Assembly (NCBI RefSeq): GCF_006345805.1
Contig: NC_043000.1
Span: 65,410,001 to 65,474,000, forward strand
DNA length: 64,000 nt
Source: Octopus sinensis
Lineage: Eukaryota
Direction of reading: 5' to 3'
Under the pieces are notes generated by a model. That model made no database searches, was not told the origin of the DNA, and worked only from the letters and a program-made list of their open reading frames with translations. This document shows, piece after piece, positions 23,836 to 31,391 of the stretch. Both the position numbers and the translations under genes were made by a program. Each line of letters starts with the position of its first letter. The stretch's first letter is position 1.

Positions 23836-25244
23836 AAGGATATCCCAGAAACAGCTGTAAGACTTTGAATTTTTTCCAATAATAATATTGTATACGACTT
23901 GAGATATTTGCCTTATCTTAATGTTTGCTGTCCTCTTTAACAATTATATATCCGCTGCATTGGAAATCTGCAATGGATCCATAACTACCATCTCAGTTAT
24001 AACACTGGAGCCCTAGTAATCCATTACAGCACTAACCTAGCATACCTAATCATTTAGAACACTTATGAACTAAACCCCCATACTTTGTATATTTATGTGT
24101 ATGTATATATATATATATATATATATATATATATATATATATACGTGTGCGTGTATGTATGTATATATATATATATATATATATATATATATATATATAT
24201 ATATATATATATATATGCATATATACTTACGTATATGTACATACTTACATCTATATATATATATATGCATATGTGGGCACAGGACATCACATAATGTGTA
24301 CAACAAAAAGATATGAAGCTCAAGTACATGGAACATGAACTATTCTTTCGAACAACGAAAGACACAAATGGAAAACAAAACAAACGACCCTTCATCAGTT
24401 GTTGGCTGTTTTTCTAGTCTCATATTTCGAGCATTTAACAACAATATACGCTTTCAATAAAACAGTTGCTCCCACAAAGCATCATCATCATCATCATCAT
24501 CATCATCGTTTAGCGTCCGTTTTCCATGCTAGCATGGGTTGGACGGTTCTACTGGTGTCTGTGAAGCCAGAAGGCTTCATCAGGCCCAGTCAAATCTGGC
24601 AGTGTTTCTACGGCTGGATGCCCTTCCTAACACCAACCACTCCGTGAGTGTAGTGGGTGCTTTTTACGTGCCAAAATTTGGGATTTTGCAGAGGGTCAGA
24701 ATTGGTAGTTTCTGTTTACCAAATCTACTCACAAGGCTTTGGTCAGCCTGGGGATATAGTTGAAGACACTTGTCCAAGGTGCCACACAGTGGGATTGAAC
24801 GCAGAACCATATGGTGCCTATGGAATGAATTATACTCTTGAAATGTAAAACTGTGTATAAAGAATGTGTCTCTGTATAAAGAATGTGTAGAGTCATCATG
24901 GGGTGGTTGGCAAAAATTGTTAGGCCTAACATTTATTACAAGATCTTGGTTTGAATTATACATTGTTCATGAATATAATATCATGGATATAGTGTTATGG
25001 GCTTTTTTCATTTAATTTCATTGAATTGATGCATAATAATCCCCTTCTACTATAGGGAAATTTTGGTCGGAAAAGAGGTTAATTGATTACACTGACACTC
25101 CGCACCCAGTGATCAACTGATACTTATTTTATTGACCCCAAAAGGATGAAAGGCAAAACTGACCTTGGCAGAATCTGAATTCAGAAGGTAAGGATGGCTG
25201 AAATAGCACTCAATATTTTGTTTGGCATGCTGACTATTCTTATT

Positions 25245-25471
25245 TATTTATTGCCCACAAGGGGCTAAACATAGAGGGGACAAATAAGGATAGACATAGG
25301 GATTAAGTCGATTACATCGACCCCAGTGCATAACTGGTACTTTATTTAACAATCCCAAAAGGATGAAAGGCAAAATCGACCTCGGCGGAATTTGAACTCA
25401 GAACGTAACGGCAGATGAAATACCGCTAAGCATTTCACCCGGCATGCTAACGATTCTGCCAGCTCGCCGCC
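25245..25471 (-). mobile_element. tRNA-derived SINE, family B; copies at ~9790-9997(-), 10186-10385(+), partial 25080-25240(-)
   Basis: Head ggcgagctggcagaatcgttagc, B-box gagttcaaattcc, core ctttcatccttttggg. Confidence 0.75.
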
Positions 25472-25615
25472 TTCATAGCATGCTAACTATTCTGTTAGCT
25501 CACCACCTTTCAGTTGATGCATAATAAGAAGAGAGAGAGAGAGGAGGAGAGGGAGAGAGAGAAATGGCACAAGTTCATGAACAATAATATAGTAATAAAT
25601 ATACATTTAACTTAC

Positions 25616-25639
25616 CTTTACATATAATTTGCCTTTGTG
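25616..25639 (-). CDS. 24-nt microexon (A)QRQIICK, phase 1-1
   Basis: ttctttgtttctttctctttcAG|cacaaaggcaaattatatgtaaag|GTAAGTT. Confidence 0.78.
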
Positions 25640-27414
25640 CTGAAAGAGAAAGAAACAAAGAATAATATTACTTAAATTCAATAAAATGGCATTATTATGA
25701 GTATGCATGTGAAGTCATATGGTACGCATATGTACAGATATATCTGTTGAGTCCTTTAGCTGAAAAATACCTCACTAAAATTGATTATGATGTATCCAAA
25801 GGAATACTCTCTCTCTCTCTCTCTCTCTCTCTCTCTCTCTCTCTCATGTGTGTGTGTGTGTGTGTATGTGTGTGGTAGGTCAGCAGGTGATACATGTCAA
25901 CATCACAATCCTCCTTTCATACTCTACAAAAAGGTTGTAGAGTGGCTACAGACACTTATACATACAAATAACACTGTGTAATACAACTTTTATCCCTAAG
26001 TGTCAACTGTTACTTCCTATCTGCTTACCCATAGAAACTATGAAAAATATTTCCTTCAAAGTTTGCTTTTGTTACATTTATTCAAACCCTAAAGAATGTC
26101 TCTCAACACATGGCTATGATGCTCCCCCATTACTCTTGCTCATGAATGACCATGGGATTGCACCTACAAAGTTACCCTCTGAGGCACAAGTCTGGGCAAG
26201 GTTGTTTTTGTGGAAGACCAGCAGCCTCTCCTCTCTATGCCACTGGTGATATCCAAGGGAAAGGCAAAAGTTGATACAGCTTGACTCCAGTGACATTGCA
26301 ACTCATTTCTACAGATGAGTGAACTGGAGCAACAAGCTACTCAAGAAACACAACACACAACCCAGTCTGGGAATCAAACTCACTACCTTATGATTGTGAG
26401 CCCGAAGCTCTAACCAATGAGCTATGCACTTTTGATCAGAGATGCACATATTGTCAGCCACTAAGGAGCATGATCAAATGGTTATGGTCAAGCAACTAAC
26501 AAGCAAATCTGTGGTATTGAGCAGAATATTCGCTATAACAATATTCCTAATTCAGCAACTCAGTGCTGAATCTGTCTGAAATGTAAAGGAAAATAGGTCA
26601 GTTTCAAAACATTGATGTCCAGGTCGCAAAAGCAAAGTTGATTTCAAAATGGAAGCAAATAGGAAATAACACTTACTAACCAAAAACAAAAAAGAAAAGA
26701 AAAATTTTGCAACATAGTATAATCACACATACATTCACACACTGTATAAATAATTATAACGAACAAGTGAGAGATAAACTGTCCTCTTGAAAGATCCTTC
26801 TGCTCTGCTCTTCTCTTGATCTTTCCTCTTCTGATTTTAACTCTATTCTCTAATGATGCATTGCATACTCTAACAGGCACCTAATAGTTTCTGAAATCTT
26901 GAATAGATCTACAACCATGGTTAAAGAGGCTCACTTCCCCTTGAGGCAGATTTGACCTCCACCAGTGGCCAGTTGTTTCAATGAAACTCCATCATTAGAC
27001 AGGTTGTTGACAAGATCTGGGAGTCTATCTGTTCTTTAATGATACTAGATTGTACTCTGCTGATTGCCATAATCTGCTGCTGCTCATATGCTTTCTTTTG
27101 ACTATGGTTTGGTAATATGGGTAGGGTACTTCTATCAGACTGTTGTAAGTATGTATGATAATGGCCTAGTATACACATTATCATGCATAAGCTAGTGTAG
27201 ATTCATTTAAGTTCTGCCTTTTGCATTATTACCCTCCTCACTAAATACTCTCAGTTGGGTTGCCAGTTTAGTCACTGACAGCTCAAGTTTTTATCATTGT
27301 TGTTGTTGCTATTGTTTTTTGTTGATGTTTTTGTTGTTGCTGAGAGATGAAAGAAGGGACTAGAACAGAACAGTTTCCTGTTGTAGAAAAGATACATGGC
27401 TACCTACATAGGAA

Positions 27415-28947: not shown

Positions 28948-28949
28948 TA

Positions 28950-29660
28950 CAATTACACCTTCCATTTTGAGTGGATTTTTGTAATGACATGCAATATTTC
29001 CATGAATATGCTCACTCTTGAATAGACTCTCAGCTTGTTAGCAACTGTTTGCATGCCAGTATTTCTCTGACACTGGGCCTCCAGATCTGCAACCCTCACA
29101 AATGCCACTGCACATCTGCCATGGATTCTTTCATCTTCTTCCCATTGTCCTGTCATTATAGTTCATGCCATACTGTTCCCAATGAGATCATTATGCATGG
29201 CGTGGACATTGCAAGTTTCCTTTCCCAGCTTAAGCTAGTGGGCTAGACCAAGGGGATGGTAAAAGGCCAAAGGGCATACCAATTTCCTGTTCTCAGTGGT
29301 AGGTTCCTCATCTTGGATGCCACTTTCTCCAGTGGCAACTTGATGCTTTCAGTTAGCAACCCAGGTTTCTTTGCTTGTCAGGTTGAAGGGAGCAAGCTTT
29401 CAAAGAACAGGCCAATTTCCAATAGGTTTGTGGTCAAGCCTGTGGTAGTGGAGAACTTTGGTGTTCTTGGTCCCTATACTACATCCCTGCTCACTGCTAT
29501 CAGGGCAAAGATGGCTATCTGCATGTGTGAGGCTTGTGAGTCTGAATGGCTGTTCCAGTGCTATCCTCATCTATGTCATGAATGTTGGGTAATGCCCAAA
29601 AGAGTACAACTGTTAATACAAGTAGCCAAAATGGAGTTTCTCTGAAGGATCTCTGGGATA
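28950..29660 (+). mobile_element. CRE-like non-LTR element C-terminal fragment
   Basis: LVG.DQGDGKRPKG...GRFLILDAT...KPVVVENFGVLGP. Confidence 0.6.
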
Positions 29661-30346
29661 ATGTTACTAGACAGGGTGCATAACTTGAAGATCAGAGATT
29701 TTCTTCAGGTTGAGTTGCTACTTCTCTGCATTGAAAAGTCACAGCTCTGGTACAACAGACATGTGACTAGAATGTCACAGGAAAGAATTACAAAATGGAT
29801 TATTTTAAGCCAAGCTGGCTGGCAGGAAACCTAGTGGGTAGACCAAGAATGTTGGTCACAACTGGAAATCCAACTGGAGAGTGTAATAACTATTGCTTCT
29901 GATAGAACCTTATGTAGGAAATGCCTGAGGACTCTAATCACACAATCTTACAAGCAAAGATGGTCAGATGGAAGGTTCATGATTAGAGCTACATGAAATA
30001 AATGATTAGCATATGGTGATCATATTAGCATATGAGGAAGCCATTCATAAGCATATAAAGTAATGATTATCTTTTTTGATACATGCAAAGTCTGTAGATA
30101 GCATTCTTCATATGGAAATTTACTGTCATATAATTCACAAGAGGTCAATCAAAGTTTTTAGGCTTGACATTTGACATGTGTCACAAGATCAAGCTTTGAG
30201 TTACATGTTGTTCATGAATATAGCAAGCAGAGAGTTTCAGGGTTGTTTCTTTTAATCAAAAAACAGAAAGTGGAGAGAAAAATTATATAGAATTTTATGG
30301 ATGATTAATATAATAATAATAATAATAATAAATACATTCAACTTAC

Positions 30347-30364
30347 CAGGACAAGATGACTGTG
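30347..30364 (-). CDS. 18-nt microexon (A)QSSCP, phase 1-1
   Basis: Long polypyrimidine tract ending tgcAG|cacagtcatcttgtcctg|GTAAGTT. Confidence 0.75.
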
Positions 30365-31391
30365 CTGCAAAAAAATTAAAAAGAGATTATAATTAACTGA
30401 TTAACTCAAATTCAATAATGTTGTAAGTATGCATGTACAGATACAAAGTGTGTGTGTGTGTCTCTCTCTCTCTCTCTCTTTCTCTCTTTCTCTCTCTCTC
30501 AGATTATTTTGTCAAATGTAATGATTATCAGTTCATATTGTTTGGGATTATTTATTTTTAGAATATTGTAGGATATGTGAAGGCCAGATCTGGCCAGTTT
30601 GAACATAAAACAAGAAAAATATTTGGACCAGTTATAGCCAGTTTAGATGCTAAAGGGATCAAGATTAATCAGCCGAAATTGCGAGGATGATCCAGTTCGT
30701 GACTGAAGATTGAAGGCTTTGAATGTCCCGTCCGTGTTTTTTGTATCGTCTTCTAAATGTTTTGCGTTCTTGTCCCAGTTTGTATTTTTTTACATATACA
30801 TATATATATATATATATGCTGAAGGAATATATATATATATGCTGAAGGGATATATATATATATATATATGAACGGAAACAGTTGCATCAAGAGATGAGGT
30901 GCCGATCTCTAATTGTAGAGGGAACATGTGGAAGGGGTAGACCTAGGAAGATGTGGTGAGAAAAGATCTACAGATGTTGGGACTCAGAGGGGATGACAGG
31001 GGACTGAGACTCTTGATGGTTTGCTGTGTTCTTTAAAAACACACCAATCTAAGTAAAAACATGGTTGTCCTTGCATACAGGCTCATTCCCTGCAACCCTT
31101 TCCAGCTGAGCATCCCTGATATAACAGTCTTGTAGGTGCTGATGCCACATAAAAAGCATCCATGCTGATGCTGTTTAAAAGCACCCAGTACACTCTGTAA
31201 AGTGGTTAGTGTTAGGAAAGGCATCCAGTCATAGAAACCATGCCAAAACAGACATGGAGCCCAAACAGACCTTCAACTGGTCAGCTCCTGCCAAACCGTC
31301 CAACTCATGCCAGCATGGAAAATGGACGTTAAGTGATGATGATGATGATGATGATGATGGTCGTCGTCGTCGTCGTCATCATATATGTATG

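Follow-up and report, generated by a model that had tools for sequence, protein, structure and literature searches.

Local copying of a candidate microexon and its intron flanks into three co-oriented units in Octopus sinensis

Introduction

New or alternative exons often originate from the copying of an existing exon along with its flanks, and tandem exon duplication in animal genes was reportedly described by Kondrashov & Koonin (2001) and by Letunic, Copley & Bork (2002). Among very short exons, those that depend on SRRM4/eMIC carry the motif UGC immediately before the 3' splice site. Neural microexons regulated by SRRM4/eMIC are 3-27 nt long (PMC8797185). In the micro-exon genes (MEGs) of schistosomes and other parasitic flatworms, a conventional first coding exon encodes an N-terminal signal peptide, and differential splicing of the microexons generates protein variants. 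Most of the MEG coding region consists of 10-20 symmetric microexons of 6-81 bp, all multiples of three (PMC10526429); one exon duplication has been reported in schistosome MEG-3 (PMC4350168), and it has been proposed that parasitic flatworms gained the MEG organization (PMC4398949). Here we describe a locus in the genome of Octopus sinensis, located in a 64-kb stretch of contig NC_043000.1 (assembly GCF_006345805.1, positions 65,410,001 to 65,474,000 of the forward strand; hereafter, the window, to which all coordinates refer). Comparison of the sequences provides good support for the view that, in this locus, one candidate microexon and its flanks were copied locally into three co-oriented units. 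In the account that we favor as probable, this was a local head-to-tail duplication of a phase-1/phase-1 microexon unit downstream of an exon that encodes the signal peptide of a gene on the minus strand.

The locus resembles described cases of tandem exon duplication in that the exons are neighboring, co-oriented, phase-compatible, apparently derived from one ancestor together with flanking intron, and could serve as cassette or alternative exons; unlike in typical cases, the exons here are only 18-24 nt long and differ in length by whole codons. With neural microexons, they share the size class of 18-24 nt and partial conservation of the flanking intron, in this case, among the copies; however, neural microexons are usually single, ancient and located inside conserved domains, whereas here a duplicated series lies behind a predicted signal peptide. 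The likeness to the SRRM4/eMIC type is weak and consists of a single trinucleotide: the acceptors of the 21- and 18-nt exons read UUGCAG, with UGC adjoining the 3' splice site, and that of the 24-nt exon reads UUUCAG; we treat UUGCAG as a lead only.

As in MEGs (PMC10526429; PMC4350168), a candidate signal-peptide first coding exon is followed by short symmetric exons, and the introns are up to ~5 kb long and rich in transposable elements. Unlike MEGs with their 10-20 microexons, only three were found here, and the predicted product shows no similarity to any protein (E≤10) and belongs to no Pfam family. We read this resemblance as one of architecture and not of membership. The locus is a further example of the known exon-duplication process, with no sign of unusually fast exon evolution. 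If the exons are real, this locus shows how a secreted peptide may grow by whole microexon modules and that exons too short to align can be traced via their introns, and its natural triplet would be convenient for studying which parts of the intron sequence the recognition of 18-24-nt exons depends on; otherwise, it is one more instance of a common process, exon duplication.

Three homologous units

The three homologous units lie on the minus strand, in the same orientation and collinear, inside 5.6 kb (24900-30472). They occupy 24900-25747, 28294-28660 and 30079-30472, each amounting to ~370-390 bp, and are denoted here U24, U21 and U18, respectively, after the candidate exons that they contain (Table 1). 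In all of them, the exon is preceded by ~110 nt of intron and followed by ~250-330 nt of intron.

The similarity among the units is well beyond the background. The Smith-Waterman scores, 83, 55 and 36, exceed both those of dinucleotide shuffles (14.4±2.0, max 25) and those of 300 real segments of the window (12.7±2.5, max 29), with z values of 9-33 against these two backgrounds. When the units were compared with each other using blastn, the E values were 3e-26 for U24 and U21, 9e-18 for U21 and U18, and 7e-10 to 3e-9 for U24 and U18. A profile hidden Markov model (HMM) of the three units (nhmmer) retrieved them with E values from 4.6e-103 to 4.2e-24, and the next matches, with E≥0.01, were to microsatellites; no fourth unit was found by this search on either strand within the 64-kb window. 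The initial annotation of this DNA, made from the sequence alone, had proposed a duplication that would be called into question if the shared blocks belonged to a dispersed high-copy repeat or if the similarity was not significant against an AT-matched shuffled background. The similarity is significant against such a background, and the units occur as three copies only in the window. A candidate fourth unit at 32586-32776, hinted at by blastn, turned out to be microsatellite sequence and was also negative in the profile search. A scan of metagenomes with the unit signature produced no matches. The exons alone are too short to reveal homology, which is detectable through the introns.

The intron-core distances are nearly equal for all pairs of units (Kimura two-parameter (K2P) distances of 0.35-0.39), which suggests that the two duplications occurred close together in time. 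The longest exact run between units is 17 nt, and long identical tracts are absent, so that recent gene conversion among the units appears unlikely. The ends of the units fade, without a sharp boundary, into a microsatellite-like degenerate (YA)n sequence.

Table 1. Features of the microexon locus (positions in the 64-kb window)
Feature	Positions	Strand	Description and evidence
U18	30079..30472	-	Exon flanked by intron, ~110 nt upstream and ~270 nt downstream; nhmmer E=1.5e-81
U21	28294..28660	-	nhmmer E=4.6e-103; unit alignments
U24, part with exon	25514..25747	-	nhmmer E=3e-54; blastn against U21, E=3e-26
U24, distal downstream-intron part	24900..25040	-	Set apart by insertion; nhmmer E=4.2e-24
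18-nt microexon candidate	30347..30364	-	CACAGTCATCTTGTCCTG (..QSSCP..); sequence signals
21-nt microexon candidate	28538..28558	-	TAGAAGAATCTGATTGTAATG (..EESDCN..); sequence signals
24-nt microexon candidate	25616..25639	-	CACAAAGGCAAATTATATGTAAAG (..QRQIICK..); sequence signals
Candidate signal-peptide exon	35601..35692	-	Predicted to encode MNPAKNTWITLFFVVIFMDMSLAAT plus 1 base, then donor GTAAGTT
15-nt invariant block	24963..24977, 28390-28404, 30208-30222	-	Minus strand TATATTCATGAACAA; identical in the three units
Distal block common to U21 and U18	28294..28320 (U18 copy, 30082-30106)	-	Minus-strand end TTTGCATG
Two SINE-like copies splitting U24	25041..25513		473 bp; 15-bp target-site duplication

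Candidate microexons

The three candidate microexons can be read as the initial annotation had given them (CACAGTCATCTTGTCCTG, TAGAAGAATCTGATTGTAATG and CACAAAGGCAAATTATATGTAAAG, with the common donor GTAAGTT). Each is delimited by a pyrimidine tract with an AG acceptor and a G/GTAAGTT donor (the slash marks the splice point), the latter being one of the four runs of ≥7 nt that are invariant among all three units. The lengths are all multiples of three, with exon indels of 3 and 6 nt, and each candidate contains a single TGT, in the same position, two codons before the donor. A single phase is open in all three, and this is the phase left by the candidate upstream exon (phase-1/phase-1).

To these signals, we add the results of a scan that covered both strands under strict requirements (at least 15 pyrimidines of 20, AG, an exon of 6-60 nt that is open in some frame, and GTAAGT). 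The scan returned the three microexons and one plus-strand candidate (27735-27781, 47 nt). When it was limited to symmetric exons in the microexon phase, only the three microexons were recovered, compared with a mean of 0.5 in shuffled sequences, of which 3 of 200 reached three symmetric, phase-matched candidates. The pattern TGYNNNG/GTRAGT occurs in the window only at the three microexon sites, with 0.58 occurrences expected. Taken together, these signals make it quite likely that the three segments are genuine exons of one gene.

After ~0.36 substitutions per site, all copies retain the AG, the G/GTAAGTT donor and the pyrimidine tract; two indels notwithstanding, the lengths are still divisible by three, and the common frame is still open and includes the TGT; and upstream, there is a signal-peptide-like exon that matches in phase and shares the donor heptamer. 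All these features speak against the alternative of a local segmental repeat without coding function, located in an intron or between genes, in which the exon-like signals come from one chance ancestral occurrence and were never spliced, even if, the copies being paralogous, a single chance AG...GTAAGT would be triplicated under that scenario. It also accommodates the failure of protein search and exact look-ups of the open reading frames (ORFs) to detect a homolog, the conservation of the exon region at a level no better than that of the flanks, and the occurrence of at least three strict candidates in 3 of the 200 shuffles. Nevertheless, we consider a non-coding repeat unlikely.

The divergence of the candidate exons can be compared with that of the introns. 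The best alignment shows 50-61% identity for the exons and 70-73% for the intron core. The exons contribute 18-21 aligned sites, for which the difference yields one-sided Fisher p values of 0.12, 0.04 and 0.30, and 66 of the 286 intron windows of equal width (23%) are as diverged as the exons or more. Thus, the fast or positively selected exon change that the initial annotation had put forward is not demonstrated: the direction is the expected one, but the difference is not significant.

A separate observation concerns the 24-nt exon. If its donor is left unused, translation would continue through ...QRQIICKGKLNVYLLLYYCS up to a stop (25575-25639, minus strand); judging by inspection by hand, this read-through could produce a short isoform with a fourth cysteine.

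Candidate signal-peptide exon and predicted product

On the same strand, ~5.2 kb upstream of the units, there is a candidate signal-peptide exon, with the acceptor AG at 35694-35693 and the ATG at 35676-35674. By eye, its predicted product, MNPAKNTWITLFFVVIFMDMSLAAT, combines a basic N-terminus with a hydrophobic core of 12 residues and has small residues at -3 and -1, the positions to which the von Heijne rule for signal peptides applies. This exon ends in phase 1, matching the microexons, and has the same donor heptamer, with the highest donor score in the set. Given this exon, the matching phase and identical donor heptamer suggest that the product is secreted. No similarity was found between the flank of this first exon and the units.

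We infer that the three segments are spliced as exons of a gene that starts with the upstream exon and has a secreted product; the exon status and the secretion of the product can be considered probable. If all three microexons are spliced in, the predicted N-terminus is MNPAKNTWITLFFVVIFMDMSLAAT-A-QSSCP-V-EESDCN-A-QRQIICK. We found no mention of the predicted peptides in the literature, and exact look-up of four neighboring ORFs gave no matches. Many weak candidates for the last exon were considered (for example, with acceptors at 23620, 22471 and 18568), none of which could be chosen.

Proposed history of the locus

The scenario that we favor starts with an ancestral segment that would have consisted of a phase-1/phase-1 microexon, complete with acceptor and donor, and of intron sequence on both sides, ~110 nt upstream and ~250-330 nt downstream. 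This ~0.4-kb segment would have been copied twice, head to tail, within the intron that follows the signal-peptide exon, presumably, by unequal crossing-over or replication slippage. The copies then would have diverged to ~70-73% intron identity, with about equal pairwise distances, while SINE-like (short interspersed element), MITE (miniature inverted-repeat transposable element) and other unrelated insertions pushed them apart. Each spliced copy would add a module of 6-8 residues with one cysteine directly behind the signal peptide and, because the three exons are symmetric, any subset of them could be included without a frameshift.

Several points weigh against this scenario. The probable exon status of the segments is read from sequence signals, and the three candidates are paralogs, so that the shared donor, the scan results, the length and phase pattern, and the TGT are not three independent observations but, in part, one observation inherited three times. 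The 46-residue predicted N-terminus has no relative at E≤10 in a collection of 5.8 billion proteins and no Pfam match, and relaxed scans downstream of the units produced no convincing further microexons and no later exon or stop that could be assigned. The copy number of the units pertains to the 64-kb window. Finally, the spacers between the units (2.5 and 1.4 kb) are mutually unrelated, save for SINE-like and microsatellite matches. The local copying of an exon with its flanks that the initial annotation had described stands, given the three collinear, co-oriented units inside 5.6 kb; in contrast, the term "tandem" used there is derived from order, orientation and proximity, on the assumption of later insertions.

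A more far-reaching proposal is that the locus is a micro-exon gene outside flatworms, with a secreted peptide whose mature N-terminus is made of tandemly duplicated, symmetric one-cysteine microexons, with combinatorial inclusion that would diversify the peptide into up to 8 in-frame variants differing in cysteine count, and with the 15-nt intron block (see below) as a shared splicing control element. We consider this proposal doubtful.

Insertions and spacers

U24 is split by two SINE-like copies that are 75% identical to each other and were inserted as one block. The target-site duplication, TTGATGCATAATAA(T/G), is present at 25026-25040 and 25514-25528, whereas U21 keeps a single empty site at 28443-28457. 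Hence, the SINE-like insertion into U24 is younger than the duplication of the units. SINE-like elements are represented by 3-7 copies in the 64 kb, and the inserted element has 3 other copies in the window. The spacer sequence looks retroelement-like by eye; the scanned spacer ORFs gave no supporting Pfam match.

The abundance of mobile elements invites a further alternative, namely, that the units are a dispersed, transposon-derived repeat that carries splice sites and was exonized, or inserted, three times independently. The region is indeed dense with SINE-like, MITE and reverse-transcriptase-like sequence, and the spacers are unrelated to each other, but the profile search of both strands detected no further copy in the remaining 58 kb, and the three units are co-oriented within one series of introns. 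Furthermore, no inverted repeats common to the units, terminal or otherwise, and no other transposon hallmarks were found; neither target-site duplications nor poly(A) at the unit ends were noticed by eye (no dedicated search was made); and the unit ends fade into microsatellite instead of being sharp. We therefore regard an origin of the units from a dispersed repeat as very improbable.

The spacers also contain a MITE-like element (28729-28949), which is 217 bp long and the sole copy in the window; its terminal inverted repeats are 31 nt long and 90% complementary, and each end carries TA. Long microsatellites of the (CA)n, (CT)n and (TG)n types adjoin the upstream (minus-strand 5') ends of the units (28024-28143, 25808-25880 and 30445-30500); such tracts could have promoted unequal exchange.

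Conserved intron blocks

Collinear blocks within the introns link the three units, as first pointed out in the initial annotation. On the plus strand, TTGTTCATGAATATA is found as an exact match at 24963, 28390 and 30208, with at least 3 mismatches everywhere else in the window; ACAAGATC lies 24-25 nt ahead of each of these copies (24938, 28366 and 30183). The A/T-rich block that had been noticed before each exon, ending in ...TAAATAYAYWTTYAACTTACC or AACTTACC, terminates at 25616, 28538 and 30347 (three matches, with 0.11 expected), and the block that follows each exon indeed aligns among all the units at 71-78% identity. The catgcaaa block attributed to the 21- and 18-nt units is present in both, but the dotted pattern proposed for it fails when taken literally (0 matches), the two copies of this distal block differing by a 2-nt indel. 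The distal block of these two units contains UGCAUG, a lead only.

On the minus strand, TATATTCATGAACAA is the longest invariant run and exceeds 99% of the column permutations (P≈0.01); the GATCTTGT block is a second candidate for an invariant intron block. The number of invariant runs of ≥7 nt is only P≈0.055 in the same type of permutation. Thus, of the conserved regulatory elements that had been envisaged in the flanks, one 15-nt run stands out, and this is weak evidence that the block is a constrained intron element.

The invariant block holds a self-complementary core, TTCATGAA. However, no conserved RNA structure was detected: in a two-sequence alignment, the consensus fold reaches only -2.25 kcal/mol, and of 18 predicted pairs, just 2 are maintained by compensatory changes in both partners. 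An intron hairpin between two TTCATGAAC blocks, traced by hand, comprises 12 bp in U24 and 8 bp in U21 and is absent from U18, and so was rejected as not conserved. Homologous exons with conserved intron blocks, along with the self-complementary core, bring to mind a mutually exclusive exon cluster of the Dscam type, in which intron blocks pair with a docking site in the RNA, but this is very improbable given that there is no docking complement (the reverse-strand matches all have 3 mismatches, 11 compared with 7.7 expected), that the fold is as weak as described above, and that the exons are unequal in length, all symmetric and separated by kilobase introns, with nothing to enforce exclusivity.

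Surrounding DNA

The window is AT-rich (~30-48% GC in 2-kb windows) and dense in microsatellites, SINE-like elements and degraded transposon ORFs; Rfam and tRNA scans found nothing in it. Degraded mobile-element ORFs are located at 36270-38498 (plus strand), 47355-50012 (minus strand) and 61900-63448 (minus strand). One degraded ORF is a fragment of a PIF1-like helicase, which we read as Helitron-like; the ORFs at 47-50 kb are retrotransposon-like, judging by their translations only. The ORF at 61900-62385 shows a weak match to reverse transcriptase, below the Pfam cut-off, and a reverse-transcriptase ORF of the window has only one relative in the protein collection, a distant one with 46% identity.

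The core of the SINE-like elements, CCATGCTRGCATGGGTTGGACGG, is found at 24522-24546, 4075-4099, 31296-31320 and 11210-11234. It is also present in four unrelated metagenome contigs, in matches of only 25-73 nt that are uninformative, and a string search of the literature found nothing; the core thus seems to be in wide circulation and to be no marker of the source organism.

Apart from the microexon units, the window contains a head-to-tail repeat of ~570 bp at 2050-3310, recognizable by ORF fragments that appear twice when the minus strand is translated, and a near-identical tandem duplication of ~433 bp, at 16000-17000, that is located between (TA)n tracts and appears to be much younger than the microexon units.

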